IMG/VR virus record: IMGVR_UViG_3300023174_005338
Span: 273,120-337,119 of that record
DNA length: 64,000 nt
Direction: 5' to 3' (one strand)
In this document: positions 4,798 to 51,953 of the stretch, piece by piece
How the letters are laid out: each line of letters opens with the position of its first letter
Numbering within the stretch: the first letter of the stretch is position 1
Translations under genes and position numbers: made by a program
Notes under the pieces: model-generated
Seen by the model: only the letters and a program-made list of their open reading frames with translations
The model's database searches: none
What the model was told of the DNA's origin: nothing

Positions 4798-6561
4798 ATG
4801 ATTCAAATAAAAAATCTCACAGTAAAAAACTTTATGAGCGTGGGCAACGCCACGCAAGGCATCGACTTTGATCGACGCGACTTGACACTTGTGTTGGGCG
4901 AGAACTTGGATCTTGGTGGCGACGGAAGCCGCAACGGCACAGGTAAAACTACTATAATCAATGCTCTTAGCTACAGCTTGTATGGGCAAGCATTAAGTAA
5001 CATCCGCAAGGACAACTTAGTCAACAAAACCAACAACAAAAACATGTTGGTCAGTTTGGATTTCAGTGTGGACGGCAAAGATTACCGGATTGAACGAGGC
5101 CGTAAACCCAACCTGCTGAGATTCTTTGTAAACAATCAAGAGCAAGTGGTCACAGACGAAGCACAAGGCGACAGCCGAGAAACACAGGATGCCATTGAAC
5201 ATACCTTGGGCCTCAGTCACGACATGTTCAAACACATTCTGGCACTCAACACTTACACAGAACCGTTTCTGAGTCTCAAAGCCACAGATCAAAGAACCAT
5301 CATTGAACAACTCCTGGGCATAACCATGCTGAGCGAGCGTGCCGATCGAATCAAAGAACACAACAGATCCACCAAAGAAGCCATACAGCAAGAAGAATTC
5401 CGTATTCGAGCTGTTCAAGAAGCCAATAAAAGGATAGAAGAACAGATTGAGGCTTTACGACGTAGACAGACATTATGGGTGACTAAACATGAAGAAGAGA
5501 TTACCAAACTCGAAACCGCGCTCGAAGAACTCAAAAAGATTGACATTGAAGCCGAGATTGCGGCCCACAAGGCGCACAAAGTATGGGATCAGAAGCGCAA
5601 GGACCTTAACGACCTGGCTGGACAGATCTCCCGCACGAAGCTTGATAAGGACCGCGAGAACAAAAGCATTGAGAAGCTTGGCAAGGAGATTGCGACACTT
5701 GAAGATCACACATGTCACACTTGCGGGCAGGCTTTCCACGACCATAAGCACCAACAGGTCCTGGCGGGTAAGCAGGCTGATCTGGCAAGAGCGCGAGAAG
5801 CGTGCCAAGAACATACACAGCTCCTTTCAGAACTCGAGACTGCCCACACAGCCTTGGGCACGTTAGGGCGACCACCTGCTATGTTCTATGATAGTGAAGA
5901 GGATGCCATACAACATCGTAGCAGCATGGCTGCCTTGCAAACTCAATTGACAAACAAACAGGCCGAAACAGATCCCTACGGCGAGCAGATAGCGGACATG
6001 CAAGGTCAGGCTTTGCAGGTAGTAAGCTATGACACACTCAATGAGCTGACCAGACTTCAGGAACATCAAGACTTCTTGCTCAAACTTTTGACCAGCAAGG
6101 ATTCATTCATACGCAAAAAAATCATTGAACAGAATTTGAGTTATTTGAATGCCAGACTCACACACTACCTGGATAGGATTGGCCTGCCGCATACCGTGGT
6201 GTTCCAGAACGATTTGACTGTGAGCATCGAGGAGCTGGGTCGTGAGCTGGACTTTGACAATTTGAGTCGTGGCGAACGCAACAGATTGATCTTGAGCATG
6301 AGCTGGGCCTTTCGTGATGTGTTTGAAAGCCTATACCAGCCCATCAATGTGCTGTTCATAGACGAAATGATTGATTCGGGCCTGGACACACAGGGTGTAG
6401 AAAATGCTCTTGCGTTGCTGAAGCACATGAGCCGCGAACGGCACAAGAGTATTTGGTTGGTCAGCCACAGAGATGAGCTAGCCGGAAGAGTTGAAAACAT
6501 ACTCCGAGTGGTCAAAGAAGGCGGCTTTACCAGTTACAACACGGATGTAGAAATTGCGTAG
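4798..6561 (+). CDS. gp46: Recombination endonuclease ATPase subunit (T4 gp46/SbcC/Rad50-like)
   Basis: Walker A NGTGKTT, coiled coil with CHTC zinc hook, signature LSRGE, Walker B LFIDE and H-loop VSH. Confidence 0.93.
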   Translation: MIQIKNLTVKNFMSVGNATQGIDFDRRDLTLVLGENLDLGGDGSRNGTGKTTIINALSYSLYGQALSNIRKDNLVNKTNNKNMLVSLDFSVDGKDYRIERGRKPNLLRFFVNNQEQVVTDEAQGDSRETQDAIEHTLGLSHDMFKHILALNTYTEPFLSLKATDQRTIIEQLLGITMLSERADRIKEHNRSTKEAIQQEEFRIRAVQEANKRIEEQIEALRRRQTLWVTKHEEEITKLETALEELKKIDIEAEIAAHKAHKVWDQKRKDLNDLAGQISRTKLDKDRENKSIEKLGKEIATLEDHTCHTCGQAFHDHKHQQVLAGKQADLARAREACQEHTQLLSELETAHTALGTLGRPPAMFYDSEEDAIQHRSSMAALQTQLTNKQAETDPYGEQIADMQGQALQVVSYDTLNELTRLQEHQDFLLKLLTSKDSFIRKKIIEQNLSYLNARLTHYLDRIGLPHTVVFQNDLTVSIEELGRELDFDNLSRGERNRLILSMSWAFRDVFESLYQPINVLFIDEMIDSGLDTQGVENALALLKHMSRERHKSIWLVSHRDELAGRVENILRVVKEGGFTSYNTDVEIA

Positions 6562-7420
6562 AATACGAGTCTTACACATTGAACCCACCGACGTTTGTCA
6601 GGCTGCATGCCCGTTGTGTGCCCGAGAGACTGACCCAAACTTTAATAAAAGTTTAAAGCATCATCTCAGAGTAGAGCACATACAAAAACATTTTTCAGAA
6701 CAAGTAATTTCCAAACTGGATAAAATGTTCATGTGTGGCAATTATGGTGATCCGGCTGCAGGCTACTATACCATGGACATCTACAACCACTTTAGAAAAG
6801 TCAATCCAGAAATTGTGTTGGGTATGAACACCAATGGTGCTGTGCAAAGCACGTTCTTTTGGCATGCGTTGGGACGATTGTTCAATCAGCCCAAAGATTA
6901 TTGTGTGTTTAGCATAGACGGATTAGAGGATACCAATCACGTTTATCGTAAAAATGTCAATTGGGCCAAGCTAATGAGCAACGTTCAAGCCTACATTGCC
7001 GCAGGTGGAAGTGCCCATTGGGACATGCTGGTGTACAAACACAATCAACATCAAGTGGATGCTTGCCAGCAACTGGCTCGTGACATGGGATTCAAGTGGT
7101 TCCGTGCCAAGGTCAGCAAGCGTGGATTCACTGATCATTTAGAATTTCCCATCGGGTGGCAACCGCCTGCGGTCAAGGCGGGGCCCATCAAATGCCATGT
7201 GATTAATGAAAAAAGCATGTACATTGATGCGCAAGGTCGTGCCAGTGCCTGTTGCTGGCTTGGTGCCACGCAACAAGATTTTGTCAAAGATGATTTGGCA
7301 ACTGTAAAATTAACTTGGAAAACAGACACACCCAATCCGGTGTGTGTCAGTGCTTGTTCCACAAACAAAAATAAAACCGTATTCCAAGACCAATGGCAAC
7401 GCGAGGTACAACTGTGTTAG
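6554..7420 (+). CDS. Radical SAM protein with C-terminal SPASM/twitch-like Cys cluster
   Basis: CQAACPLC motif, GNYGDP, TNG, FSIDG; C-terminal YIDAQG...CC. Confidence 0.85.
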   Translation: MRRIRVLHIEPTDVCQAACPLCARETDPNFNKSLKHHLRVEHIQKHFSEQVISKLDKMFMCGNYGDPAAGYYTMDIYNHFRKVNPEIVLGMNTNGAVQSTFFWHALGRLFNQPKDYCVFSIDGLEDTNHVYRKNVNWAKLMSNVQAYIAAGGSAHWDMLVYKHNQHQVDACQQLARDMGFKWFRAKVSKRGFTDHLEFPIGWQPPAVKAGPIKCHVINEKSMYIDAQGRASACCWLGATQQDFVKDDLATVKLTWKTDTPNPVCVSACSTNKNKTVFQDQWQREVQLC

Positions 7421-8424
7421 CCACCTGGCATTTTCATATCGAAATCAGTTCAAAGTGTACCCTGCGTTGCCCACGCTGTGCCAGACAAGAGGTTCCCGAC
7501 AGTTTAGTAAACACTGAACTGGATTTAGAATTTTTTAAAAGAAACTTTACCGCAGAGTTTGTTCTTGACAATGTAGAAAAGATCACATTTTGTGGTGACG
7601 ACGGTGATCCTATCTATGCTCACGACCTTATACCAGTGATTCAATACATCAAGTCAATCAAACCTGTTGAGATTGTAGTTGTCACAAATGGATCACACAA
7701 GAAACCAGAATGGTGGCGTGAACTTGGTGGCGTGCTTAGTGAGCAAGATACTGTACACTTTAGCATCGACGGTTGGGACTACCCAAGCAACAATCTGTAT
7801 CGTGTCAACAGTGATTTCAACAGTATTGTCGACGGAATCACTGCACTACGATCAACCTCTGAGTGCCACCTTGTGTGGGCTGCCATTGTCTTTGGGTTCA
7901 ATGAACACCAACTGGGCGCTATGAAAAATCATGCACGTTTGCTAGATATGGATGTATTTCAACTTACCAAGAGCACCAAGTTTGGCTCCGTTTATCTCTC
8001 CTACGGTCCAATCGATGAGCTAGAGCCCAGCCGGCCGTTTGTCAGCAGTTCACACAGATTTGAGAGAGATGTTACACCGATAAGCTCGCGTGGACTCAAT
8101 TCACAGACAAACACCAAGAACATACAATTATACAAATCTGCTGTAGAGATCAACGGTGTAAAACCCCTGTGTGAAATTGGCAACAAAGGACTTTATATTG
8201 ACGCCCAAGGTAGATTATTCCCTTGCTGTTGGGTAGCAAACCGCTACAGTCACAATTCAGAATGGAAAGCTATTGCTAACAAATTTGATTTGAATCGTCG
8301 CACACTGGCCGACGCTGTAACTGACGATTTTTGGTCAACAACATTTAAAACCTTTGGGTGGCAAGAGTGCCAGACTAAGTGTGTAGCGAGCAGGGTAAAT
8401 GAAAAATATGCAACTGAGTGGTAA
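7414..8424 (+). CDS. Radical SAM protein with SPASM/twitch-like domain (paralog of the upstream gene)
   Basis: CTLRCPRC, GDDGDP, TNGS, FSIDG and YIDAQGRLFPCC. Likely GTG start at 7414 with a GAGG SD. Confidence 0.85.
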   Translation: MLATWHFHIEISSKCTLRCPRCARQEVPDSLVNTELDLEFFKRNFTAEFVLDNVEKITFCGDDGDPIYAHDLIPVIQYIKSIKPVEIVVVTNGSHKKPEWWRELGGVLSEQDTVHFSIDGWDYPSNNLYRVNSDFNSIVDGITALRSTSECHLVWAAIVFGFNEHQLGAMKNHARLLDMDVFQLTKSTKFGSVYLSYGPIDELEPSRPFVSSSHRFERDVTPISSRGLNSQTNTKNIQLYKSAVEINGVKPLCEIGNKGLYIDAQGRLFPCCWVANRYSHNSEWKAIANKFDLNRRTLADAVTDDFWSTTFKTFGWQECQTKCVASRVNEKYATEW

Positions 8425-9227: not shown

Positions 9228-9268
9228 ATTGATGAGCGACAGCGAATCAATAGATCTCTAAGAGATCT
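9228..9268. terminator. Hairpins between convergent transcription units
   Basis: ATTGAT...ATCAAT stem and AGATCTC-TAA-GAGATCT inverted repeat at the 3' end of the minus-strand operon. Confidence 0.4.
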
Positions 9269-9603
9269 CAGAACTGATCAGGAAAGTCTCGGAAAAGTGC
9301 GTGCTGAATGTTGCCACTCACAAACTGATTAAAACTTTTGTGTTTGGTTTCTAGTTCACCTTCAAGTGGTGCGACTCTTCGGAATGCCGCGTCCATTTGA
9401 CCCATGTCCTTGAATTCCATTAGTATCATGAATTCAGGCATGTCTGCAATACTACGAAAACCCATCTTGCATCTAGTGATTCTATATGATTCCATTTTTC
9501 CTTCTGAGATCAAATGATCAAAGAAACTTTTCATTCCGTTGACCCAGTCCAGGTCTGAGATATTGCCTTCTTTGTCTGCCCAAATTGTATATAAGTCTGC
9601 CAT
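9268..9603 (-). CDS. DUF6614-like protein
   Basis: DLY.IW.D, HL..EG..ESYRITR.K.GF, PEF.I.MEF.D..Q.D.AF and terminal H pattern. Confidence 0.55.
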   Translation of the reverse strand: MADLYTIWADKEGNISDLDWVNGMKSFFDHLISEGKMESYRITRCKMGFRSIADMPEFMILMEFKDMGQMDAAFRRVAPLEGELETKHKSFNQFVSGNIQHALFRDFPDQF

Positions 9604-10540: not shown

Positions 10541-10771
10541 TTAAAAGAAAGGCAGGCCCGTCTTCTTTGTGGTTTCTAAGTTTTCTTTGATCAAGTTGCT
10601 GATAGTGTTGCGCTCTTGTACACTGAGATGTAGAGCTTGATCGTAGCTGATGCCGCCACGCATGTACCAGGCCACTTTGATCGCTTCTTGTCTTATGTCC
10701 TGTGTTTCTTTGTCCATCTGATCCACGACTTTGGAAATCTGGTCAGAGTCCAAGACTAAGAGGCGGGCACG
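10541..10771 (-). CDS. Small baseplate/tail assembly ORF (gp51-like position), probably the -1 frameshift extension of the upstream gene
   Basis: WYMRGGISYDQA..LS..ER motif. Overlaps the 3' end of 10756..11589 in the -1 frame at a T TTT TTC site. Confidence 0.55.
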   Translation of the reverse strand, partial: RARLLVLDSDQISKVVDQMDKETQDIRQEAIKVAWYMRGGISYDQALHLSVQERNTISNLIKENLETTKKTGLPFF

Positions 10772-11589
10772 AAAAAACTGGCCATGTCCAAGGTCAACAC
10801 CTGCTCGTACTGGTGTTTGCAGGCCGTGCATTCCAGGTTGAGTGGTTGAAGTTCGCTTTGTTCACGCAGTCGCAACACATGATCACGTATCTGATTGAAC
10901 AGATCTCGATCGCAGTTTTTCAGGAATTCTTCAATGAAAGCTGGTTCTCGGACCAGGGCCTGTGGAGTTTTAATTGTGACAATGCTGATGGCCAGGCTTC
11001 GCACAGTGATTTCAGTCAGCTGTCTGAATGCTTGGTTAAGGGCAGCCATCTTGTCGGCTTCAGATATTGTGCTGTCAGGTATGACCTGCAACAGTTTTTG
11101 TTGTTCGTACTGCAATGCACTGTTGTCATTGAGATTTTTATAGCTCAACGGACGGAAATAGATCTCCAAATCGCCGTGTGCAATGTGTGCCGCGTAGTCA
11201 GGCGCTCGCAGGGCATCCAACATGGTTCTTAAATCTATGGTGCGTTCTGACGTGTCGTTACAGGCCGGGCACGTGGTTGCAAACTCCATGTCATGTCCGT
11301 AGCTGGCTATGCGTATGGCTATAAGGATGGTGTCTAGATCAATACCGGGCACTGCCCAGGCATCTCGGATGTTTGGCACACAGCTCTGTATCACGTTGAC
11401 AGTGGCCTGTCCGTTGAACAAGGCATCTGGTGTGCGATAGGTAATTTCGTCTATGGCAGTCATGGGATACACTGGCAATTCACCATTGGCTGGCATGTTT
11501 AACGTGCCAGCAGGATAGTTCTGCCCGCCACTGGGCAACTTTATGTAGATGCTGGGTTGTCGGAAATACTGACTTAAAGGATTGCTCAT
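10756..11589 (-). CDS. Baseplate hub/tail assembly chaperone-like protein (T4 gp26-like)
   Basis: YIKLPSGG..Y, PMTA.DE, D.D.ILIAIRIASYG, CPAC and CTAC pairs, ending ..SFF. Divergent from the tape measure gene. Confidence 0.65.
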   Translation of the reverse strand: MSNPLSQYFRQPSIYIKLPSGGQNYPAGTLNMPANGELPVYPMTAIDEITYRTPDALFNGQATVNVIQSCVPNIRDAWAVPGIDLDTILIAIRIASYGHDMEFATTCPACNDTSERTIDLRTMLDALRAPDYAAHIAHGDLEIYFRPLSYKNLNDNSALQYEQQKLLQVIPDSTISEADKMAALNQAFRQLTEITVRSLAISIVTIKTPQALVREPAFIEEFLKNCDRDLFNQIRDHVLRLREQSELQPLNLECTACKHQYEQVLTLDMASFFVPAS

Positions 11590-11623: not shown

Positions 11624-13702
11624 GTGGAAAACATGGACCCAAATGAATTACAAGCCGTATCCGAAGCCCTAGAACAACTGCGCCAAGGCGGTACTATTTC
11701 GGCCGAAACCTTGGCCAAACTGGGCGGAACCACGCAGAGTGTCAACAAGGCCCTAGAAGGTTACACCAAACGACTGCTGGGCGCGACCTCGGCCATAGGT
11801 GGCATGGCCAAGCAAGTGGCCGACGGCGAAGGCAGTTTCAAATCTCTAGGTGGTGCTATTTCGGGATTGACCGGCGTGGTTGGAAAACTGGCCAGTGCCA
11901 TACCCTTGGTTGGTGGTGCAGCCAAGGCTCTGGCCGAAGGTGTAGGCGAAGCGGCCAAGTTTGTGCTGGATCAGTTGGATGTCATGGCCAAGAACTACCA
12001 AACTCTGGGCGACGCCAGCGCCACTGCTGCTGACGGGGTAGACGGATTATTACGCCAGTTCAATCAGATGGGCAACTACAGCCTACCGGCTTTTGCCAAA
12101 GCAGTAAAGGCCAACACTCAAGGACTGGCAGCACTTAGTGGAACAGCTGCCCTGGGTGCCGAAGAGCTCAGCAAAGTGTCCGGAGTATTGACCACCGGCG
12201 ACACTGCCAGAAAGTTTTTAAAACTGGGCATAGGATTAGATGCTGTGGGAGATGCCACAGCACAGTACCTAGCTGACAGTGCCAGATATGGCATTACTCA
12301 AGGCGCTACTACGGAACAATTGACCAAAAAAACACAAGACTACATTGTAGAAGTCGACAAGATAGCCCGACTCACAGGACAGACACGAGAACAACAACAA
12401 CGAGAAGCACAGAAAAGTCTAGTGGATGCTAGATTCCGCGCCAAGCTGGCAGAAATGACAGCCAATGGACAAAAGGATCAAGCAGACCAGTTGAGATTGT
12501 ACGTAGACGGGCTGGGCGGAGCTGCTGGAGATGCTGCCCGTGCCTTGGTCACAGGAATTCCGTTGACCAAAGAGGCTGCAGAAGCCAACTTGTTTACCGG
12601 TGATGCCCTTAGACAAAATACACAAGATATCATAGCAGGAAACAAAAGATCTGTGCAGGCCATAGCCGACACTGAAGAAGCCATGTCAAGAGGAGCAGAC
12701 ACATTTGGCACTCTAGCTCAATACGGCAAAGATTTAGGCGGCCTCACTGTGCAGAGCTTGGATGCCAAGGCCAGAATACAAAACAAAACATCCTTGCAAC
12801 GTCAGCAAGAAATTTCAGACGCCCAAGAAAAAACAGCCAATGCAGCAGGCAAGGCCACAGAAGAGTTTACAGACGCACAGTTGGCCACAGCCGGCGCCAG
12901 CAAAAATCTACAAAGCCTGGGCTTTAGTCTAGCTACCTATGCCGTGCCCGCAGTCAACAAGTTTGCCTCGGCATTGGAATCAGTTACCGGCAGCATGAAC
13001 AAGTATCTTGGAGTAGGCGGCACCAAATCAACTCCTGCTGGTGTGGATCGTGGTGCTGCCGGCGGACCCAGAGCTGCCATGGGCGGTGTGGTTCCGGGTA
13101 GATCGGTAACCATTGGTGATCAAACTAGAACTGGAGGCGACCGCAACTGGCGCAATAACAATCCAGGCAATATTGAATATGGACCATTTGCCATCAAATA
13201 TGGTGCCATTGGCAGCGACGGCAGATTTGCCATATTCCCCACAGAAGAACAAGGTCGCATGGCACAAGATGCCTTGCTCAAAAGCAAAAACTATGCCAAC
13301 TTGAGCCTGGCAGATGCTGTCAAACGTTATGCTCCATCCAACGAAAACGACCCCAAATCATATGCTCGCCAGATAATGGCTCAGACTGGCATTGACCAAA
13401 ACATGCGATATGCTGATCTCACTCCAGAACAACAAAGTCGAGTATTGGATGCCATGAAACGCATCGAAGGCGGACGAGCCGGTACAATCAGTGGACCTTC
13501 GGGCAATTATTCCAGTACCATGTCTGGGGTCAATCCACCATCGGCCGGTGTCACCACACAAGCACAAGCTGATGCCAATTCTGAAGAAGTTAGGTCCGTT
13601 AATCCGCTGAACAAAATGGTCACTCTGTTGACCGAATTGGTAAGAACCGAGCAACAGGCCACGGCCTATCAACGACAAATATTACAGAATAGCAAGGCAT
13701 AG
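11624..13702 (+). CDS. Tape measure-like protein with C-terminal peptidoglycan hydrolase-like domain
   Basis: Ala/Gly/Gln-rich helical N-terminal region; RNNNPGNI...DGRFAIFPT.E.G...YAP..END...Y lysozyme-like virion domain. Confidence 0.7.
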   Translation: MENMDPNELQAVSEALEQLRQGGTISAETLAKLGGTTQSVNKALEGYTKRLLGATSAIGGMAKQVADGEGSFKSLGGAISGLTGVVGKLASAIPLVGGAAKALAEGVGEAAKFVLDQLDVMAKNYQTLGDASATAADGVDGLLRQFNQMGNYSLPAFAKAVKANTQGLAALSGTAALGAEELSKVSGVLTTGDTARKFLKLGIGLDAVGDATAQYLADSARYGITQGATTEQLTKKTQDYIVEVDKIARLTGQTREQQQREAQKSLVDARFRAKLAEMTANGQKDQADQLRLYVDGLGGAAGDAARALVTGIPLTKEAAEANLFTGDALRQNTQDIIAGNKRSVQAIADTEEAMSRGADTFGTLAQYGKDLGGLTVQSLDAKARIQNKTSLQRQQEISDAQEKTANAAGKATEEFTDAQLATAGASKNLQSLGFSLATYAVPAVNKFASALESVTGSMNKYLGVGGTKSTPAGVDRGAAGGPRAAMGGVVPGRSVTIGDQTRTGGDRNWRNNNPGNIEYGPFAIKYGAIGSDGRFAIFPTEEQGRMAQDALLKSKNYANLSLADAVKRYAPSNENDPKSYARQIMAQTGIDQNMRYADLTPEQQSRVLDAMKRIEGGRAGTISGPSGNYSSTMSGVNPPSAGVTTQAQADANSEEVRSVNPLNKMVTLLTELVRTEQQATAYQRQILQNSKA

Positions 13703-19797: not shown

Positions 19798-19842
19798 TGA
19801 TTACAAGTTTAGGTAAAAGTGAGGTTTATCATAAATAATATT

Positions 19843-20601
19843 ATGAACAAATACAAAACTTGGTATAACAACATTACTGAAAACGCCAAAACTCGTATAT
19901 CGGATGGATATACGGAACGGCATCACATTATCCCTCGAAGCCTAGGCGGATCTGACAGTAAAGAAAACTTAGTTGATCTCACAGCCAGAGAACATTTCAT
20001 ATGTCATTGGTTACTGATTAAAATGCATACTGGCGAATCAAAAGCTAAAATGATTTATGCTCTAAATGGTATGAAACGAAATGGCAGATTTAACGAAAGA
20101 TATGAAACCAAAATAACAAGTAGAGTTTATGAAAAGCTCAAACAAGAATTTTCTCTTATACACTCTGCCAACATGAAAGGTCGCACTGCCCACAATAAAG
20201 GTGTTCCTGCCACAGAAGAACAAAAAGAAAAAAATAGGCTGGCCGCAAAAGGTAGGAAGATGAGTCCAGAATCAATCGCGAAAGGTGTAGCCAAGCGCCG
20301 CGGACAAAAAAGAACAGAAGAGCAAAAGGCAAAAATTGCAAAATCAGTAAAAGAAGCACTTGCTAAAAACCCAAGAGGCCCAATGAGCGATGAACATAAG
20401 TTAAAAAGGTCATTAGCATCATTGGGTAAACCAAAGCCAGCTGGGCATACTGAAAGAAGACTTGCGACTCTTGCCAAGCAGTTGGCAGAAGGCACGCATT
20501 ATAGTCAACAAAAAAAGACCTGTCCACACTGCGGAGTAGTTGCAAGTAAAGGTCCTTACACAAGGTATCACGGACCTCACTGCCAGGCCCTCAAACCTTA
20601 A
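19843..20601 (+). CDS. Free-standing HNH homing endonuclease with NUMOD3-like repeats
   Basis: ERHHIIPRSLGGSDSKENLVDLTAREHFICH; basic repeats; C-terminal CPHC. AT-rich; TAAATA 5 nt before the ATG. Confidence 0.85.
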   Translation: MNKYKTWYNNITENAKTRISDGYTERHHIIPRSLGGSDSKENLVDLTAREHFICHWLLIKMHTGESKAKMIYALNGMKRNGRFNERYETKITSRVYEKLKQEFSLIHSANMKGRTAHNKGVPATEEQKEKNRLAAKGRKMSPESIAKGVAKRRGQKRTEEQKAKIAKSVKEALAKNPRGPMSDEHKLKRSLASLGKPKPAGHTERRLATLAKQLAEGTHYSQQKKTCPHCGVVASKGPYTRYHGPHCQALKP

Positions 20602-25722: not shown

Positions 25723-25972
25723 AAATATCCCTGCTACGTCACGGATTTTTTGCTGAGAAATAAATACAGTATCCTTCCAACAGACCACTGCTGTCTACCC
25801 AGCAACACCGTCTCTCCAGAGCGAATAGCTCCAAAAAATCGTGTTGCAATATCCAAAATATCCGGACTCTGGTAAATACATCATAGCCCGTGAATTTTCA
25901 CGAGCTTAAAATTTAAGGTTGATGACATTGAGTCATCAACAGTGTTGTAAAAAGGCAATCGGAGATAAAAAA

Positions 25973-28900
25973 ATGCCAGTCACACGAATTAATAACAATC
26001 AAGTCACAGACGCTTCAGCAGGCAATACCATTGTTGGTATCAACGCAGGCACCAAACTGCAAAATTACTCGATCACTGCTACCAAGATCGCCAACAACTT
26101 GACCTATGGTTCGGATTTGACTATCACAGGTAATTTGACCGTCCAAGGCAATACCACAGCCATTGACACCACGACAACTACCATTGAAGATCCGTTGTTG
26201 TTGTTGGCCTCAACACAAACAGGAGCCCCATCAGTAGACATTGGTTATATTGGCGAGCGCGGCACCAGCGAAAATATTGCATTTGTATGGGACGAAAGTG
26301 CCAGCGAATTTGTTACGGCTTTTACCAGCACAACTGATTCCAACACAACCATAACTATCACCAGCTATGCCAATGCTCGCGTGGGCAACATGGTAGTAGG
26401 TGGCACTACCAGTTTATCTGGCAACGTGATTGGCACAGCAAACTTCACAGGCAACGTTAATGCAGGCAACGTGAGTGCAGTTGGCACTATGAGAGCTGCT
26501 TCAACTGTGGGCGGTGTGATAACCGGTTCGAGTGCAAGTGTCACAGGTGGAGTCACTGCCGCATCGGTTGCAGGTGGAGTCATTACAGGTACAAGTACAA
26601 GTGTCACTGGCACACAAACAGCTGCGAGTACAGTGGGTGGAGTCATAACTGGCACAAGCGCAAGTGTCACAGGTGGAGTCACTGCCGCATCAGTGGCAGG
26701 TGGCGTTATCACCGGAACTTCTACTTCAGTAACAGGAACACAAACCGCCGCCTCAACAGTGGGTGGCGTCATAACCGGTTCGAGTGCAAGTGTCACAGGT
26801 GGAGTCACTGCCGCATCGGTTGCAGGTGGCGTTATCACCGGAACTTCTACTTCTGTAACTGGCACACAAACTGCTGCTTCGACAGTGGGTGGTGTAATCA
26901 CCGGAACTTCTACTTCTGTAACTGGCACACAAACCGCCGCCTCAACAGTGGGTGGTGTTATTACTGGTTCCAATGTCAGTGTCTCTGGCAACGTTGTTGC
27001 TGCAGGGAACGTAAGTGCCGCTTGGTTGATTGGTAACATACAAGGTTCAGTGACATCACCTGGTGCCAACACACAGATCTTGTTCAACGACAGCGGAGTG
27101 GCCAATGCCACTGGCGGATTCACATTCAACAAAACATCAAACTTGGTCACTGTAGGTGGCAACGTCAACGCAACCAATTTCAATGGCAATGTGTTTGGCA
27201 CAAGTGTCAGTGCAAGTGGTACGGTAACAGCTGCCTCAACTGTGGGTGGAGTTATCACAGGTACATCAACTTCTGTAACTGGCACACAAACTGCTGCTAG
27301 TACAGTGGGCGGTGTGATTACAGGTTCAAGTTCAAGTGTCACAGGAACACAAACAGCTGCCTCAACAGTGGGTGGCGTAATCACCGGAAGTTCTACTTCC
27401 GTAACTGGTAGTCAAACAGCTGCCTCCACAGTGGGCGGCGTAATCACTGGATCAAGTGTCAGTGTCACAGGCACAGCCACTGCGGCCTCAACTGCGGGCG
27501 GTGTGATCACTGGATCAACCATCAGTACCACAGGCAACATCACAGGTCCCAATGTCAATGCAGCACAACTTTACAATGCCACTGCGGTCACGGTCAAAGC
27601 CGGCACAGGCAACATTAATCTTGATACCACTTCAGGCAACATCGTGGTCAACAATACCTACATCAACGGTGTACAATTAAACCCAGTACAGAACTCGGAC
27701 GTGGCATCTAAGTATTATGTTGACCTCCAGGCTTCAACAGCATTGACCTTCCACTCAGCAGTGCAAGCGGCCACCACAACGACCCTGGCCACAACCACGG
27801 GTGGTACTATAACCTACGCACAACCCAATGGTGTTGCCAATGGCGTTGGTGCTACGTTAACTACAACTGGCTCGTTCAACCTCATCGACACAGCCAACGT
27901 TCAAACCGTGGGCACAAGAATCTTGGTCAAGAACGAAGGCAATGGTGTATTCAACGGCGTTTACACCTGGAGCAATGCCACAGTGATCACACGTGCCACA
28001 GATGCTGACGTTTACGGACCCAACGATGCAGAAGAGCTCAGCCTCAACGACTATTTCTTTGTGGCTGGCGGCAACGTCAACGTGGGATCTGCCTGGGTGG
28101 TTGATGCTCCACAAGGAGTCATCACATTTGGCACTAGCAACATCCAATTTGCCCAGTTCAGCCAAGCCCAGATTTATTCAGCCAATACCTCAGCTGGTTT
28201 GAGCCTAATAGGCACAGTGTTCTCAGCCAAGGTCGACAACAATACCACGGCCTTTGACGGACAAGGCAATATTTCAGTCAAAGCTGGCGCAAACCTGACC
28301 ACACCCAACATTGGTGCTGCCACAGGTACAAGTTTAAGCGTCACTGGCACAGTCACAGCCGCATCAACCGTGGGTGGAGTCATAACTGGCACAAGCGCAA
28401 GTGTCACAGGTGGCGTCACAGCCGCATCGGTGGCAGGTGGTGTGATAACAGGTACAAGTACAAGTGTCACTGGCACACAAACAGCTGCGAGTACAGTGGG
28501 TGGAGTCATAACTGGCACAAGCGCAAGTGTCACAGGTGGAGTCACTGCCGCATCAGTGGCAGGTGGCGTTATAACAGGTACATCAACAAGTGTCACTGGC
28601 TCACAAACAGCAGCCTCAACAGTGGGTGGTGTGATTACGGGTACAAGCGTCAGCGTTTCTGGCAACGTAACAGCTGGCAACACCAACAGCAACTTGTATG
28701 GAACCACAGTCAGTGCCAGTGGCACTGTGACTGCTGCTAGTACTGTGGGTGGAGTAATCACAGGAACTTCTACGTCTGTAACCGGCACACAAACTGCCGC
28801 GAGTACAGTGGGTGGTGTAATTACTGGATCAAGTGTGTCAGTCACAGGTGGTGTAACAGCCGCTTCAGTGGCAGGTGGAGTGATCACTGGCACAAGTACC

Positions 28901-31276
28901 AGCGTAACTGGCACACAAACAGCGGCATCTACAGTGGGTGGTGTCATAACAGGAACATCTGCTTCATTGAGTGGTAACGTCACTGGTGGCAACATCCTAA
29001 CCAGCGGCAACGTAAGTGCCACAGGCAATGTCACAGGTGCTTGGTTGATTGGTAACATACAAGGATCGGTCACATCTCCTGGTGCCAATACCCAGATTTT
29101 GTTCAACGACAGCGGTGTAGCCAATGCCACAGCAGGATTCACGTTTAACAAGACCTCAAACTTGGTCACTGTGGGTGGCAATGTCAATGCCACCAATTTC
29201 AATGGCAATGTGTTTGGCACCTCAGTCAGTGCTAGTGGCACAGTTACAGCCGCGTCTACGGTGGGCGGAGTCATAACCGGATCAAGTGCTAGTGTAACAG
29301 GTACTGTGACTGCTGCATCAACAGTGGGTGGTGTGATTACCGGATCAACAGCCAGCCTTAGTGGCAATATAACTGGAGCCAATCTCATACTGTCATCGGG
29401 CTTTGTAGATGGTCCAGCCGCAGGCAGGATCACCATCAATGGAAGAGACTTTGATACAGACTTTGCTGTGGATGGCAATACTGCAGCCAACGTGTTCTAT
29501 GTGGATGCCGGCACAGGCACAGCCAGCTTTGGCAACAGCACACAGGTCACCAATGCATTGGTATCTTTCCAGAGCACAAACTCAATCCGGACGCCAGTAG
29601 GCAACACAGCACAGCGTCCAAGTGTGGGTGTCACAGGTATGTTGCGTTTCAATACCACTACCAACGCTGTGGAAGTCTATGACAACAGTCAATGGACCTC
29701 GGTGGGTGTTCCAGTGTTCACAGTGATAGCTGACCAACAGTTTGCGGGTGATGGCAGCACAGTAGCATTTACACTGGGCAGCACACAGACAACCAACAGT
29801 TGTATTGTTTCGATCAACGGTGTGGTACAGATTCCAACCCTGGCCTATGCAGTAGCAGGCACCAATCCAACCTGCGTGCTCACATTCACAGAAGCTCCGG
29901 CTGCTGGTGACGTGATTGATGTGCGCCAGATCACCACAACAACCACAGTTACTCAGATCAGCAATAGCAGCGGCAATGCTGCGGTCTCAACCAGTCCTAG
30001 CTCTGCACAGGTCAATGTCACTGGAGACCTCAGTGTCAGTGGAAGTATCTTGGGTGGTAATATCAACAGCACTGCTATCACCAATGGCACATCAAACATG
30101 TCAGTGGTCAGCAGTGGTGGCAACATACGTGGCAACGTGGGCGGCACCACAGTCATGACCATAAGCCCAGGTCTAGTAGACATTGTGGGCGACTTGACTG
30201 TGTCGGGCAATGCCACACTCAGCGGCAACATCCTGGGCGATCGTGTACAGAATGGTACAACCAGCATTGACATCCAAACACCCAATGGCAATGCCAACAT
30301 CAGTATTGCTGGCACAAGCAACGTGGCTGTGTTTACCACCACTGGTGTAAGTGTCGCTGGCAACGTTTCGGCTGGCAATGTTCTAATCAGTGGCAATATT
30401 GTTGACACAAATGCGTTAAGCATTATTACAGGTAGCAACGGTAACATTGCTTTGGCACCCAATGGCTCAGGCATAGTCACAGTGAGTTCTGCTTTGAGTG
30501 CCACCGGCAACATCACAGGTGGCAATCTTAGATTGGGATCGGGCAGCAATGCGGTATTGGATTTTGCCAGCGCCAATCTGCACATAACAAACAACAATGC
30601 CAGTGGCAATATCACTTTGTTTACCAATTTTGGTGGCAGTGGTGTTGTTGAGGTCTTCAAAGTACTTGGCACAGGCACACAGGGGGTGTTTACCAATGGA
30701 GATATTACACTCAGTGGCAACATCAGTGACACTGGTGCACTTAACATTAACACAGGCAGCAACGGTAACCTGACTCTTAATGCTGGCAGTGGTAGTATTA
30801 TAATCAACAGTGGCATCCTCAACGGTCAAGCCAATGCCACAGGCAATATTGGTAGCGCCACCAGTTATTTCAACACCATATTTGCCAAAGCCACTTCAGC
30901 ACAGTACGCTGACTTGGCCGAGAAATACACCGCAGACGCAGAATATGCACCGGGTACAGTGGTACAGTTTGGTGGCTCAGCTGAAGTTACCTTGTGTGTC
31001 GACGATGGCTGTGCAAGAGTGGCAGGTGTAGTTTCTACCAACCCCAGCTACAGAATGAACGATGGCTTGCAAAGTGCGCATACTGCCATGGTAGCACTCA
31101 CTGGTCGTGTGCCTACAAGCGTAACTGGCACAGTGCGCAAAGGTGACATGATGGTGTCAGCTGGCAACGGCACAGCAAGAGCTGAAGCCAATCCACAGGT
31201 AGGAACAGTGATTGGCAAAGCCCTGGCTGACAGCGAAGGCGATGCAGTTATAGAAGTAGTAGTCGGCCGCGTTTAA
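25973..31276 (+). CDS. Giant repeat-rich tail fibre-like protein with C-terminal intramolecular chaperone (peptidase G2/IMC-like)
   Basis: ATG 25973 with GGAG SD; 21-aa Thr/Ser/Gly repeats; RILVKN....NGVY module; C-terminal ATSAQYADLAEKY...VALTGRVP...IGKAL. Confidence 0.75.
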   Translation: MPVTRINNNQVTDASAGNTIVGINAGTKLQNYSITATKIANNLTYGSDLTITGNLTVQGNTTAIDTTTTTIEDPLLLLASTQTGAPSVDIGYIGERGTSENIAFVWDESASEFVTAFTSTTDSNTTITITSYANARVGNMVVGGTTSLSGNVIGTANFTGNVNAGNVSAVGTMRAASTVGGVITGSSASVTGGVTAASVAGGVITGTSTSVTGTQTAASTVGGVITGTSASVTGGVTAASVAGGVITGTSTSVTGTQTAASTVGGVITGSSASVTGGVTAASVAGGVITGTSTSVTGTQTAASTVGGVITGTSTSVTGTQTAASTVGGVITGSNVSVSGNVVAAGNVSAAWLIGNIQGSVTSPGANTQILFNDSGVANATGGFTFNKTSNLVTVGGNVNATNFNGNVFGTSVSASGTVTAASTVGGVITGTSTSVTGTQTAASTVGGVITGSSSSVTGTQTAASTVGGVITGSSTSVTGSQTAASTVGGVITGSSVSVTGTATAASTAGGVITGSTISTTGNITGPNVNAAQLYNATAVTVKAGTGNINLDTTSGNIVVNNTYINGVQLNPVQNSDVASKYYVDLQASTALTFHSAVQAATTTTLATTTGGTITYAQPNGVANGVGATLTTTGSFNLIDTANVQTVGTRILVKNEGNGVFNGVYTWSNATVITRATDADVYGPNDAEELSLNDYFFVAGGNVNVGSAWVVDAPQGVITFGTSNIQFAQFSQAQIYSANTSAGLSLIGTVFSAKVDNNTTAFDGQGNISVKAGANLTTPNIGAATGTSLSVTGTVTAASTVGGVITGTSASVTGGVTAASVAGGVITGTSTSVTGTQTAASTVGGVITGTSASVTGGVTAASVAGGVITGTSTSVTGSQTAASTVGGVITGTSVSVSGNVTAGNTNSNLYGTTVSASGTVTAASTVGGVITGTSTSVTGTQTAASTVGGVITGSSVSVTGGVTAASVAGGVITGTSTSVTGTQTAASTVGGVITGTSASLSGNVTGGNILTSGNVSATGNVTGAWLIGNIQGSVTSPGANTQILFNDSGVANATAGFTFNKTSNLVTVGGNVNATNFNGNVFGTSVSASGTVTAASTVGGVITGSSASVTGTVTAASTVGGVITGSTASLSGNITGANLILSSGFVDGPAAGRITINGRDFDTDFAVDGNTAANVFYVDAGTGTASFGNSTQVTNALVSFQSTNSIRTPVGNTAQRPSVGVTGMLRFNTTTNAVEVYDNSQWTSVGVPVFTVIADQQFAGDGSTVAFTLGSTQTTNSCIVSINGVVQIPTLAYAVAGTNPTCVLTFTEAPAAGDVIDVRQITTTTTVTQISNSSGNAAVSTSPSSAQVNVTGDLSVSGSILGGNINSTAITNGTSNMSVVSSGGNIRGNVGGTTVMTISPGLVDIVGDLTVSGNATLSGNILGDRVQNGTTSIDIQTPNGNANISIAGTSNVAVFTTTGVSVAGNVSAGNVLISGNIVDTNALSIITGSNGNIALAPNGSGIVTVSSALSATGNITGGNLRLGSGSNAVLDFASANLHITNNNASGNITLFTNFGGSGVVEVFKVLGTGTQGVFTNGDITLSGNISDTGALNINTGSNGNLTLNAGSGSIIINSGILNGQANATGNIGSATSYFNTIFAKATSAQYADLAEKYTADAEYAPGTVVQFGGSAEVTLCVDDGCARVAGVVSTNPSYRMNDGLQSAHTAMVALTGRVPTSVTGTVRKGDMMVSAGNGTARAEANPQVGTVIGKALADSEGDAVIEVVVGRV
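26490..29370 (+). repeat. Coding 63-nt (21-aa) tandem repeats in three blocks, plus an internal duplication
   Basis: Units TAASTVGGVITGTSTSVTGTQ / TAASVAGGVITG.SASVTGGV. The segment WLIGNIQGSVTSPGANTQILFNDSG...NVFGTSVSASGTV occurs twice (~27020 and ~29040). Confidence 0.9.
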
Positions 31277-31354: not shown

Positions 31355-33673
31355 ATGGGATTAACCAAACCGCGTGCCGCGCAGATATTTAATTTAGATT
31401 ACAAACAAAGTACGCGAGTCGTTACCGCCACCAACATCACCTTGAGTGGCGGTGCCCCTAACAGTGTAGATGGCATAAATCTCAGCTTGAATGACCGTGT
31501 GCTGGTAACAGGTCAAACAGCAGGCAGCCAAAACGGACTTTACCTGGTGACCACACTGGGTTCTGGTAGTAACGGAACCTGGGCTAGAACCAGCGACGGC
31601 AACGAAAACGGCGAAATTGAAGCTGGCATGATTGTCATGGTCACCGAAGGCATCATCTATGCCGACACACAGTGGAAACTGATCACCGACGATCCTATAG
31701 TGATTGGCACCACGGCCCTGACGTTTACGCAAAACTACATGGCCAACTCAATATCGAGCGGTACATCAAACGTGGTGGTTGGTAGTAATGCCAATGTGAC
31801 CATCAGTTCAGCAGGCACCGCCAATGTGTTGACTGTAAGTTCAACAGGTACAGTTACATCGGGCACAGGATCAGTTACCGGAAATATCACAGGTGGTAAT
31901 ATCCTAACTGGTGGCCAGGTAAGTGCCACAGGTAACATCACTGCCAACTACTTTTTGGGCAACGTGGCCTGTGCTTCGGGCATATTTTCATCCAGAATAT
32001 TCAACGGTACTAGTGAAGCCAACATTGGAGCATCGGGTGGCAATGCCAACATCAGCATAGGTGGCACATCAAACGTGGCAGTATTTGCCACCACAGGTCA
32101 ATTCGTAACTGGACTGATTAGTGCCACAGGCAACATTACAGGTGGTAACGTTTTGAGCGGAGCCAACATCAATGCTACTACTTACACAGGAACTACAGTT
32201 TCAGCCACAGCCAACATCACTGGCGGCAACGTATTAACCGGGGGGATCGCAAGTGCCACAGGCAACATCACAGGCGGCAATATTCGCACAGCCGGCACGG
32301 TTTCGGCCACAGGCTGTGTTTATGGTATTGAACTTTATTCAACTCAAAGCAGCGGAGATGAAGGTGGCCAGTTAAATCTAGCATTGGCCGCCACAAATAC
32401 AACGTTGTCAACTTCGGTGGCCATAGATATTTTTCAAAACCGAGTAAGGATTTTTGAAACTGGCGGAACCAACCGTGGTGGATATTTTGATCTGTCAACC
32501 TGTAATGCTGGTGTTGGCACTAACTTTGCAGCTGGTGGTGGCGGGGGCGGAACTCCTGGAGGAGCCAACACACAAGTTCAATATAATAATTTAGGGGCTT
32601 TTGGCGCCAGTGCAGCCTTTACCTTCAACAATGTATCTAATGCTGTGGTTGTTACTGGCAATATCACCGGCGGTAACTTATTGACTGCTGGTTTAATTAG
32701 TGCCACTGGCAATATCACCGGCGGCAACATCTTGGGCGGAGCCAATGTCAATGCAACCACGCATACAGGAACCAGTGTAAGTGTAAGTGGTGGTGTAACC
32801 GCTGCTAGTGTGGCTGGTGGTGTGATCACAGGAACATCAACATCGGTAAGTGGAGGAGTTACAGCCGCATCAGTAAGTGGTGGTGTGATCACAGGCTCAA
32901 GTGTCAGCGTGTCTGGAACTGTGACAGGTGCAAGTTTGGCTGGAACCATAACTACTGCCAGCCAAACAAATATCACCGCTGTTGGCACATTGGGCAGTTT
33001 GAGTGTGACAGCCAACACAACTGTTGGTAACTTATTGACCGGAGGTTTGATTTCGGCCACAGGCAACATCAGCGGGGGTAATTTTAATATTACAGGTAAC
33101 ATTGTTGACACAGGTGCATTGGCCATCATCACCAGCTCCAACGGTAACATTACCTTGTCACCCAATGGCACCGGCGTAATCGTAGTCAACACCGATATTA
33201 GAAATGGTCAAGCCAATGCCACAGGTAACATTGGTAGTGCTACAAACTACTTCAATACTGTGTTTGCCAAAGCCACTAGTGCTCAATATGCCGACTTGGC
33301 AGAAATGTATGCCAGTGACCAGCCGTATTCTCCTGGCACCGTAGTAGAATTTGGAGGATCTGCAGAAATCACACAATCTACCCAAAGTCATAACACACGT
33401 GTGACTGGTATAGTATCCACCAATCCTAGTTACTTGATGAATGCCACACTCACGGGCGATCATGTGTTGCCAGTGGCCTTGGTGGGACGAGTCCCTTGTC
33501 AGGTTGTTGGAACCATTGTCAAAGGCGATCGCCTGGTGGCCAGCGACAAGCCCGGTGTTGCCACAGCCCTGGATGGGGCCAAGTATCAGCCGGCTTGCAT
33601 TATTGGTAAGGCCTTGGAAAACTATGATTCTACAGAAGTTGGAACCATAGAAGTGGCCGTGGGCAGGACCTGA
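31355..33673 (+). CDS. Tail fibre-like protein, paralog of the upstream fibre, same C-terminal chaperone domain
   Basis: DRVLV.GQT..SQNG.Y module, GNITGGN repeats, and AKATSAQYADLAEMY...VALVGRVP C-terminus. Confidence 0.75.
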   Translation: MGLTKPRAAQIFNLDYKQSTRVVTATNITLSGGAPNSVDGINLSLNDRVLVTGQTAGSQNGLYLVTTLGSGSNGTWARTSDGNENGEIEAGMIVMVTEGIIYADTQWKLITDDPIVIGTTALTFTQNYMANSISSGTSNVVVGSNANVTISSAGTANVLTVSSTGTVTSGTGSVTGNITGGNILTGGQVSATGNITANYFLGNVACASGIFSSRIFNGTSEANIGASGGNANISIGGTSNVAVFATTGQFVTGLISATGNITGGNVLSGANINATTYTGTTVSATANITGGNVLTGGIASATGNITGGNIRTAGTVSATGCVYGIELYSTQSSGDEGGQLNLALAATNTTLSTSVAIDIFQNRVRIFETGGTNRGGYFDLSTCNAGVGTNFAAGGGGGGTPGGANTQVQYNNLGAFGASAAFTFNNVSNAVVVTGNITGGNLLTAGLISATGNITGGNILGGANVNATTHTGTSVSVSGGVTAASVAGGVITGTSTSVSGGVTAASVSGGVITGSSVSVSGTVTGASLAGTITTASQTNITAVGTLGSLSVTANTTVGNLLTGGLISATGNISGGNFNITGNIVDTGALAIITSSNGNITLSPNGTGVIVVNTDIRNGQANATGNIGSATNYFNTVFAKATSAQYADLAEMYASDQPYSPGTVVEFGGSAEITQSTQSHNTRVTGIVSTNPSYLMNATLTGDHVLPVALVGRVPCQVVGTIVKGDRLVASDKPGVATALDGAKYQPACIIGKALENYDSTEVGTIEVAVGRT

Positions 33674-44836: not shown

Positions 44837-45463
44837 ATGACAACAGCCTCACTTACCAAACTAACAGTACCACTGGCCAGCGATCAAAGCACATCGGCAC
44901 AAGGTTTGCTGATGCCAAAACTCAAGTATCGCTTCCGCGTTACTTTTTTGAATCTGGGTGTTACCCAGCCCACAACAGAACTGACCAAACAGGTCATGGA
45001 TTTTACACGTCCACAGGTCACGTTTGACAACATTGACCTGCCCATCTACAACAGCACCATACGTTTGGCCGGCAAACATTCATGGACAGATATCACTTGT
45101 CAGGTGCGTGATGACGCAGCCGGCAATGTCAGCCGCTTGGTCGGTGAGCAACTGCAGAAACAGTTGGATTTCTTGGAACAAAGCAGTGCCGCTTCGGGCA
45201 TTGACTACAAGTTTACCACAGTGTTTGAAGTGTTAGATGGAGGCAATGGTGCCAATGCTCCTATTGCCCTTGAAACCTGGACCATCTTGGGTTGCTATCT
45301 ACAAGGGGTCAACTACAACGATGCCAACTACGGTTCTGGCACAGAGCCCATGACAGTGAGCATGACCATACGCTATGACAACGCCTTGCAGACCTTGACT
45401 GGTGCTGATGTGGGTGTTGGTGCGTCAATTCCGTTGACAGTCAACAACGTAGCCACAGGTTAA
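44837..45463 (+). CDS. gp19: Tail tube protein
   Basis: PKLKYRFRV, RP.V.F, AGK..W..I and IRYDNA; follows the sheath gene. Confidence 0.85.
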   Translation: MTTASLTKLTVPLASDQSTSAQGLLMPKLKYRFRVTFLNLGVTQPTTELTKQVMDFTRPQVTFDNIDLPIYNSTIRLAGKHSWTDITCQVRDDAAGNVSRLVGEQLQKQLDFLEQSSAASGIDYKFTTVFEVLDGGNGANAPIALETWTILGCYLQGVNYNDANYGSGTEPMTVSMTIRYDNALQTLTGADVGVGASIPLTVNNVATG

Positions 45464-51320: not shown

Positions 51321-51953
51321 ATGACGTCTATAATCTACAAAATCACAAATCAACTTACAAACAAGTCCTACATAGGTTGGACCAGTCAATCTTTTGATGC
51401 AAGATGGTGCCAACACAAAAAGCTGGCACAAAAAAATCAAGATAATCGACCATTTTACAATGCTATAAGAAAATATGGAATAGATTGCTGGACTCAAGAA
51501 ATTCTTGAAGAAGTGTGTGACAAAAATTTAGCAAAACAAAAAGAAATAGAATACATCAAACTGTTTGAATCCTATGACAAGGGATATAATGCAACCAGAG
51601 GAGGAGATGGCAACAACGACATAAAAATGTCAGCTGAATCTAATTTGGCTCGTAGCCTGGCACTTAAAGGAAAACCAAAAAATTACGTCCGAGCGCCAGG
51701 AAAAAAACAGTCAGCAGAAAGTCGTAAAAAGATATCTGATGCACACAAGGGCATGAAAAAACCCTGGGTAAAATGGACTCAAGAACAAATTGTTAAACGT
51801 GCTATGACACGCCGAGCCCTTAGTGAACAACAATACAATCAAATTCATGAGTTAAGAAAAACCGGTTTGAGAATTTGTGACATTGCAAAACAAGTTAATA
51901 CCAGTTCTGACCTAGTCAAAAAATGGCTCAACAAGTCTTGGAATTTGAGCTAA
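51321..51953 (+). CDS. Free-standing GIY-YIG homing endonuclease (Seg-like) with NUMOD3 and HTH tail
   Basis: IIYKITN...KSYIG.T, R..QH, E..YI and GYN.T.GG. AT-rich. Confidence 0.85.
   Translation: MTSIIYKITNQLTNKSYIGWTSQSFDARWCQHKKLAQKNQDNRPFYNAIRKYGIDCWTQEILEEVCDKNLAKQKEIEYIKLFESYDKGYNATRGGDGNNDIKMSAESNLARSLALKGKPKNYVRAPGKKQSAESRKKISDAHKGMKKPWVKWTQEQIVKRAMTRRALSEQQYNQIHELRKTGLRICDIAKQVNTSSDLVKKWLNKSWNLS

Follow-up and report, generated by a model that had tools for sequence, protein, structure and literature searches.

As the tails of many long-tailed phages are built with the help of a frameshifted gene, we wondered whether a lake-water jumbo phage likewise makes two tail-assembly proteins from one gene, which phage T4 encodes as the separate genes 26 and 51. 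The question was raised by an earlier note, which read a probable programmed −1 frameshift at a U UUU UUC site and proposed that the gp26/gp51-like pair is one frameshifted chaperone gene. To address this, we analysed a 64,000-nucleotide stretch of DNA (the window), which is the last 64 kb of a complete 337,119-bp virus record with terminal repeats (IMGVR_UViG_3300023174_005338). Based on comparative sequence analysis, the gene is most likely decoded in two ways, with some ribosomes slipping back one base at a conserved heptamer.

Anatomy of the frameshift locus

Inspection of the minus strand confirmed every coordinate in the earlier note. The gene ends AGT TTT TTC GTG CCC GCC TCT TAG, so that T TTT TTC lies in X XXY YYZ phase, and the −1 frame is open from the C of the heptamer, reading R-A-R-L-L-V-L-D-S-D-Q. 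The features are as follows.

10756-11589, minus strand: 0-frame ORF from the ATG at 11589 to the stop TAG at 10758-10756 (277 aa), the counterpart of T4 gp26.
10771-10777, minus strand: slippery heptamer T TTT TTC (U UUU UUC; 10777-10771), four codons before the 0-frame stop.
10541-10771, minus strand: −1 frame extension of 76 codons (10771-10544) plus the stop TAA at 10543-10541, the likely counterpart of the C-terminal tail of T4 gp51.
10541-11589, minus strand: span of the inferred transframe product of 273 + 76 = 349 aa (11589-10771 in frame 0, then 10771-10544 in frame −1).

The 277-aa protein belongs to Pfam PF12322 (T4_baseplate; 56.1 bits against a cut-off of 24.5, residues 60-273 on profile positions 42-218) and to phrog_150 (baseplate hub). 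A scan of the whole genome showed that this is its only PF12322 gene (E = 1.2e-15). In contrast, Pfam, PHROG and NCBIfam searches gave nothing for the extension, although the Pfam copy used did not report PF28602, the family of the gp51 tail, even for T4 gp51. The phage carries T4-type portal, protease, major head protein, sheath, tube and head-closure genes, but is not a close T4 relative. Whereas blastn of the locus against phage genomes found nothing, tblastn showed that the nearest isolates are jumbo phages at about 27-32% identity (Phosso, Atu_ph07, the PA5oct group and the Rak2/121Q group), and very many near relatives occur in lake and freshwater metagenomes.

Conservation and constraint at the heptamer

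The bare heptamer is not unusual, as it occurs 22 times in the window against 15.7 expected. The site is therefore more than chance only because of its conservation in relatives. In the four isolates examined first, the gene ends with the same in-phase T TTT TTC one to three codons before the stop, followed by a −1 ORF of 71-77 codons with a shared W-Y-M-R-G-G motif. Among 80 IMG/VR loci (47-96% identity), every locus with an intact gene end had the heptamer and an extension of exactly 76 codons. Overall, the in-phase heptamer was present in 84/84 jumbo-type loci, 68-69 of them unique, spanning 28-96% protein identity and including the isolates Phosso, Atu_ph07, PA5oct, 121Q, CBB, GAP32 and SCTP-2. 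It was also present in cyanomyophage Syn19 and in 40/40 unique cyanomyophage-type IMG/VR loci, one codon before the stop and with a −1 extension of 60-64 codons. Xoo-sp13 and XacN1 instead have T TTT TTT, which also leads into the −1 frame, and two distant relatives have the extension in the +1 frame: Mel-JY01, which has a T7 run, and LR756508, which has no T run and its own ATG. The 0-frame stop is conserved as well, as nearly all of the 120 closest protein clusters are 277 aa, with a few of 278 or 290 aa.

We next examined constraint at the nucleotide level. Across 68 unique jumbo-phage genes, the two slip-site Phe codons were always TTT TTC. In contrast, an invariant Phe near the N-terminus was TTT in 39 and TTC in 26, and all other Phe codons split 434/235. 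The codon preceding the slip site always ended in T, although it varied among CAT, AGT, AAT, CGT, GAT and TCT, encoding five different residues. Strikingly, the most variable positions switched from 0-frame wobble positions to −1-frame wobble positions exactly at the heptamer. The first −1 codon is CGN, whose variation is synonymous in the −1 frame but encodes V, A, E or G in frame 0. Nei-Gojobori pN/pS for extension codons 1-18 was 0.56 in the −1 frame, against 1.05 and 1.29 in the other two frames; it was 0.35 for codons 19-76, and 0.43 in frame 0 for the 30 upstream codons.

To determine whether the small ORF has its own start, we mapped potential start codons downstream of the heptamer. 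The position of the first ATG, GTG or TTG varied from codon 2 to codon 19, and none was present in the first 30 codons in 9 of 65 sequences. The first ATG lay at codon 30 or later, beyond conserved residues, in 12 of 65, and PA5oct has no start codon and no annotated ORF there. Together, the conserved heptamer and phase and the lack of a conserved start codon or SD favour the frameshift proposed in the earlier note.

We also searched for stimulatory signals. Single-sequence folds had z-scores scattered around 0, including that of the window, and RNAalifold found no consensus structure. An upstream SD-like GGA is absent wherever the Leu-Asp pair is replaced, and was rejected as a general stimulator. 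As no universally conserved stimulatory element was found, efficiency may be low, as it is for lambda G/GT. However, homogeneous pyrimidine heptamers with UUY codons are among the motifs that are shift-prone in E. coli (Sharma et al., PMC4066793). One candidate long-range stem, found by hand, has only partial support, and we regard it only as a hint.

10704-10764, minus strand: candidate stem (10764-10757 with 10711-10704) starting 6 nt 3′ of the heptamer, weak in this window (5 of 8 pairs).

In 62 unique relatives, 70% of cells in this stem pair, against at most 53% in slid registers, and twelve relatives have a perfect 8-bp stem.

Relationship to T4 gp26 and gp51

To investigate how the two predicted products relate to T4 proteins, we compared them with gp26 and gp51, which in T4 are listed as hub assembly chaperones; gp51 is required for assembly but absent from the particle (PMC3004832). 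NCBI names the family "gp26 family baseplate hub assembly chaperone". T4 gp26 (208 aa) ends ...EFFELL, encoded with TTC TTT; it has no slippery site and no extension, and gene 25 follows. T4 gp51 (249 aa) is encoded divergently next door and reads GTG TTT AAG straight through. The two are paralogues (BLASTP E = 2e-6). PF12322 covers gp26 residues 1-206 and gp51 residues 1-201, at full profile length in both, and F200 of gp51 therefore aligns with F273 of the window protein, the last Phe of the slip site. After F200, gp51 continues in frame with K-L-L-V-N-P-D-E-I, whereas the window continues in the −1 frame with R-A-R-L-L-V-L-D-S-D-Q-I. T4 gp51 hits phrog_150 at E = 2.6e-84 and, with its C-terminal part, phrog_634 (baseplate hub assembly catalyst), and all 90-odd gp51 homologues from T4-type phages carry PF12322 plus PF28602 in one frame.

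The cyanophage extension is clearly related to the gp51 tail: that of Syn19 hits phrog_634 at E = 7.6e-28, and hhalign of the cyanophage extension against the gp51 tail gave 95.8% probability (E = 7.8e-9). An HMM built from conceptual cyanophage transframe products aligned to T4 gp51 as one stretch, from HMM position 156 to 284, straight across the junction, but to T4 gp26 only as far as the junction. For the jumbo-phage extension the evidence is weaker. That of the window did not hit phrog_634, and an HMM of the jumbo transframe products was too weak to span the junction. Although hhalign of its profile against the single T4 gp51 sequence gave only a spurious weak hit to the gp51 N-terminus, profile-profile comparison with the gp51 tail gave moderate support (P = 4.5e-5 over 30 columns, 69% probability); similarity to the cyanophage extension was weak (P = 0.013). 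Overall, this suggests that T4 gp51 is a natural in-frame version of the predicted transframe protein, and that gp26 corresponds to the unshifted one. Nonetheless, the proteins are longer here (277/349 aa against 208/249 aa), and identity to T4 is below 20%.

These data support a model where most ribosomes read frame 0 and stop four codons after the Phe-Phe pair, giving a 277-aa protein equivalent to T4 gp26. At U UUU UUC, a fraction of ribosomes would slip back one base, with both tRNA-Phe re-pairing on UUU, and read 76 more codons to make the 349-aa protein. T4-type coliphages (Straboviridae) have no such site and encode the short and the long form as two neighbouring paralogous genes. By analogy with T4 genetics and lambda G/GT, the two forms probably act together in building the hub and tape-measure core of the tail, with the long form as the minor species. 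If this reading is right, hundreds of cyanophage and jumbo-phage genomes are mis-annotated, as a "hypothetical" or "gp51" mini-ORF is really the tail of a transframe protein. A quick unrooted tree placed gp26 and gp51 together on one side of a supported branch (SH-aLRT 96), away from the single-gene lineages, which fits a duplication in the T4 lineage, although the branches are long and the root is unknown. It is possible, though tentative, that a single recoded gene is the ancestral state of the whole T4 superfamily and the long-missing counterpart of lambda G/GT, which T4 and its close relatives resolved secondarily into genes 26 and 51. This would explain why T4 seemed to lack the otherwise near-universal tail-assembly frameshift and why gp51 acts in small amounts.

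At the structural level, AF2 predicted a mixed alpha/beta N-domain (pLDDT 86.7, pTM 0.81) and two long helices for the extension (pLDDT 88.4). No meaningful PDB match to the N-domain was found by sequence, by Foldseek or by VIA-align beyond a generic helical hairpin. However, in a library of predicted viral structures the same fold appeared in "baseplate hub assembly" proteins of many myovirus groups. The N-domain also contains a likely metal site, inferred from conserved residues.

10819-11271, minus strand: four cysteines, C107 and C110 (11271-11260) and C254 and C257 (10830-10819), a likely Zn-binding site of the family.

These cysteines, F272 and F273 were invariant in two alignments, and C110, C254, F272 and F273 remained invariant in a six-sequence alignment with T4 gp26. 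Two CxxC motifs also occur in T4 gp26, and one CxxC plus a CC in T4 gp51, which has VF at residues 199-200.

Alternative routes to the extension and the parallel with lambda G/GT

The same 349-aa fusion could also be made by RNA polymerase stuttering on the T6 run, inserting one U in the mRNA. As the protein would be identical, the comparative data cannot separate this from ribosomal slippage. In its favour, the site is a homopolymer run, the Xanthomonas phages have T7, and Mel-JY01 has T7 with the extension in the +1 frame, which a one-U deletion in the transcript would reach. We nonetheless consider it unlikely, as productive transcriptional slippage in bacteria and phages generally seems to use runs of about 8-9 or more, and the heptamer is a textbook X XXY YYZ site. 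Moreover, the run never lengthened in 108 unique sequences, although T TTT TTT would still encode Phe-Phe; this argument is weakened because the C is also the first base of the conserved Arg/Gln codon of the extension.

It is also unlikely that the 76-codon ORF is only a separate small gene, translated from its own start or by termination-reinitiation. The ORF is annotated as a separate CDS in Phosso, 121Q, CBB, GAP32, Xoo-sp13, XacN1, SCTP-2 and, truncated, in Syn19 (Syn19_012/Syn19_013), where the small gene starts at an internal ATG that cuts off about 19 conserved residues. An ATG overlaps the 0-frame stop in Phosso, Atu_ph07 and 121Q, so separate translation may coexist with slippage in some phages, and LR756508 has the homologous ORF in the +1 frame with its own ATG and no T run. 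However, this model does not explain the invariant synonymous positions of the heptamer, purifying selection in the −1 frame begins at the codon that overlaps it, and T4 gp51 shows that the two parts function as one polypeptide. A sequencing or assembly error, or a decaying gene, is excluded because the same run length, phase and stop occur in more than 100 independent assemblies and in isolate genomes from different laboratories, with both frames under purifying selection.

Frameshifted tail-assembly factors are already known from lambda gpG/gpGT and P2 gpE/gpE+E′ (Xu, Hendrix & Duda 2004; Levin et al. 1993; cited through PMC5009743), whereas we found no paper describing a frameshift in gp26/gp51-type genes in full-text searches that did not cover subscription journals. 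The earlier note called the pair G/GT-like, but this holds only as an analogy of mechanism and, less clearly in the window, of position. Two products sharing an N-terminus are predicted here from comparative genomics, yet no chaperone family was hit in Pfam or PHROG, only PF12322, and the protein is much larger and Cys-rich. If the reading is right, the fixed-ratio logic of G/GT would extend to the T4 superfamily through an unrelated protein family. The earlier note also placed the gene against the tape measure gene; the neighbour is a probable, not a proven, tape measure protein, and is transcribed divergently.

11624-13702, plus strand: divergent neighbour of 692 aa, a probable tape measure protein carrying a cell-wall-hydrolase-like domain.

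This protein has an A/G/Q-rich helical sequence, and its residues 507-639 match PDB 9vvp chain L (Gp29) at E = 4e-8. Its ESM Atlas neighbours include tape-measure clusters, which is a lead only, and the PA5oct counterpart gp335 is a virion protein by MS. There was, however, no BLAST similarity to T4 gp29 or to the Syn19 giant protein, and no Pfam tape-measure family (PF10145 or PF20155) matched anywhere in the genome. In the window, the frameshift gene lies about 33 kb from the tube gene at 44837-45463. In contrast, the order in Mel-JY01 is sheath, tube, gp26-like, extension, giant protein, and in Syn19 the gp26 and extension pair precedes a 1549-aa protein.

Variant ends of the gp26-like gene in distant relatives

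Variants of the junction between the gp26-like gene and its extension were seen in four phages. In the Xanthomonas phages Xoo-sp13 and XacN1 (loci L086 and L088), the slip site is the variant T TTT TTT, ten codons before the stop, and the first -1 codon is TAT instead of CGN. In Microcystis phage Mel-JY01 (locus L092, 2742-2967), the gp26-like gene ends AAC TTT TTT TGG, a T7 run, and the homologous extension lies in the +1 frame, not the -1 frame. This could mean a -2/+1 shift, transcript slippage, or a homopolymer length error in the record. The gp26-like gene of the uncultured 484-kb phage LR756508 (locus L093, 2719-3018) ends without any T run. Here, an extension-like ORF lies in the +1 frame with an ATG 8 codons before the stop, and this lineage may translate the tail separately.

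A possible long-range stem downstream of the heptamer

On the minus strand of the window, a possible long-range stem starts 6 nt 3' of the heptamer and is formed by two segments:
10757-10764 (-), one arm of the possible stem
10704-10711 (-), the other arm of the possible stem
Although this stem is a perfect 8 bp (GCCUCCUG/CAGGAGGC) in about a fifth of relatives, it is weak here.

Other products and annotations of the gp26 family

T4 gene 26 has an annotated internal in-frame product, 26' (locus L005, phage T4, 4803-5090), which is a different way of making two proteins from this gene family and is unrelated to the frameshift. Whether gp26-like proteins stay in the virion is unclear. The homologue in phage CBB (locus L089, 1489-2346) is annotated as 'structural protein', whereas the homologue in PA5oct (locus L003, 2501-3355) lacks the MS note that its neighbour carries.

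Other genes in the window

In addition to the gp26-like gene, the following genes were noted in the window:
6554-7420 and 7393-8424 (+), two adjacent, overlapping radical-SAM genes
9268-9603 (-), a DUF6614 gene (E = 5e-22)
19819-20601 and 51321-51953 (+), homing-endonuclease-like genes (phrog_655, phrog_314)
25919-31276 (+), a 1785-aa ORF
31355-33673 (+), a 772-aa ORF
The DUF6614 gene lies three genes downstream in the same transcription direction as the gp26-like gene. The two radical-SAM genes lie just upstream of the structural block of a phage genome, and the homing-endonuclease-like genes are inserted among head and tail genes. The 1785-aa ORF and the 772-aa ORF that follows it share a C-terminal phrog_22593 domain, and the second of the two has an N-terminal fibre/decoration-like domain.
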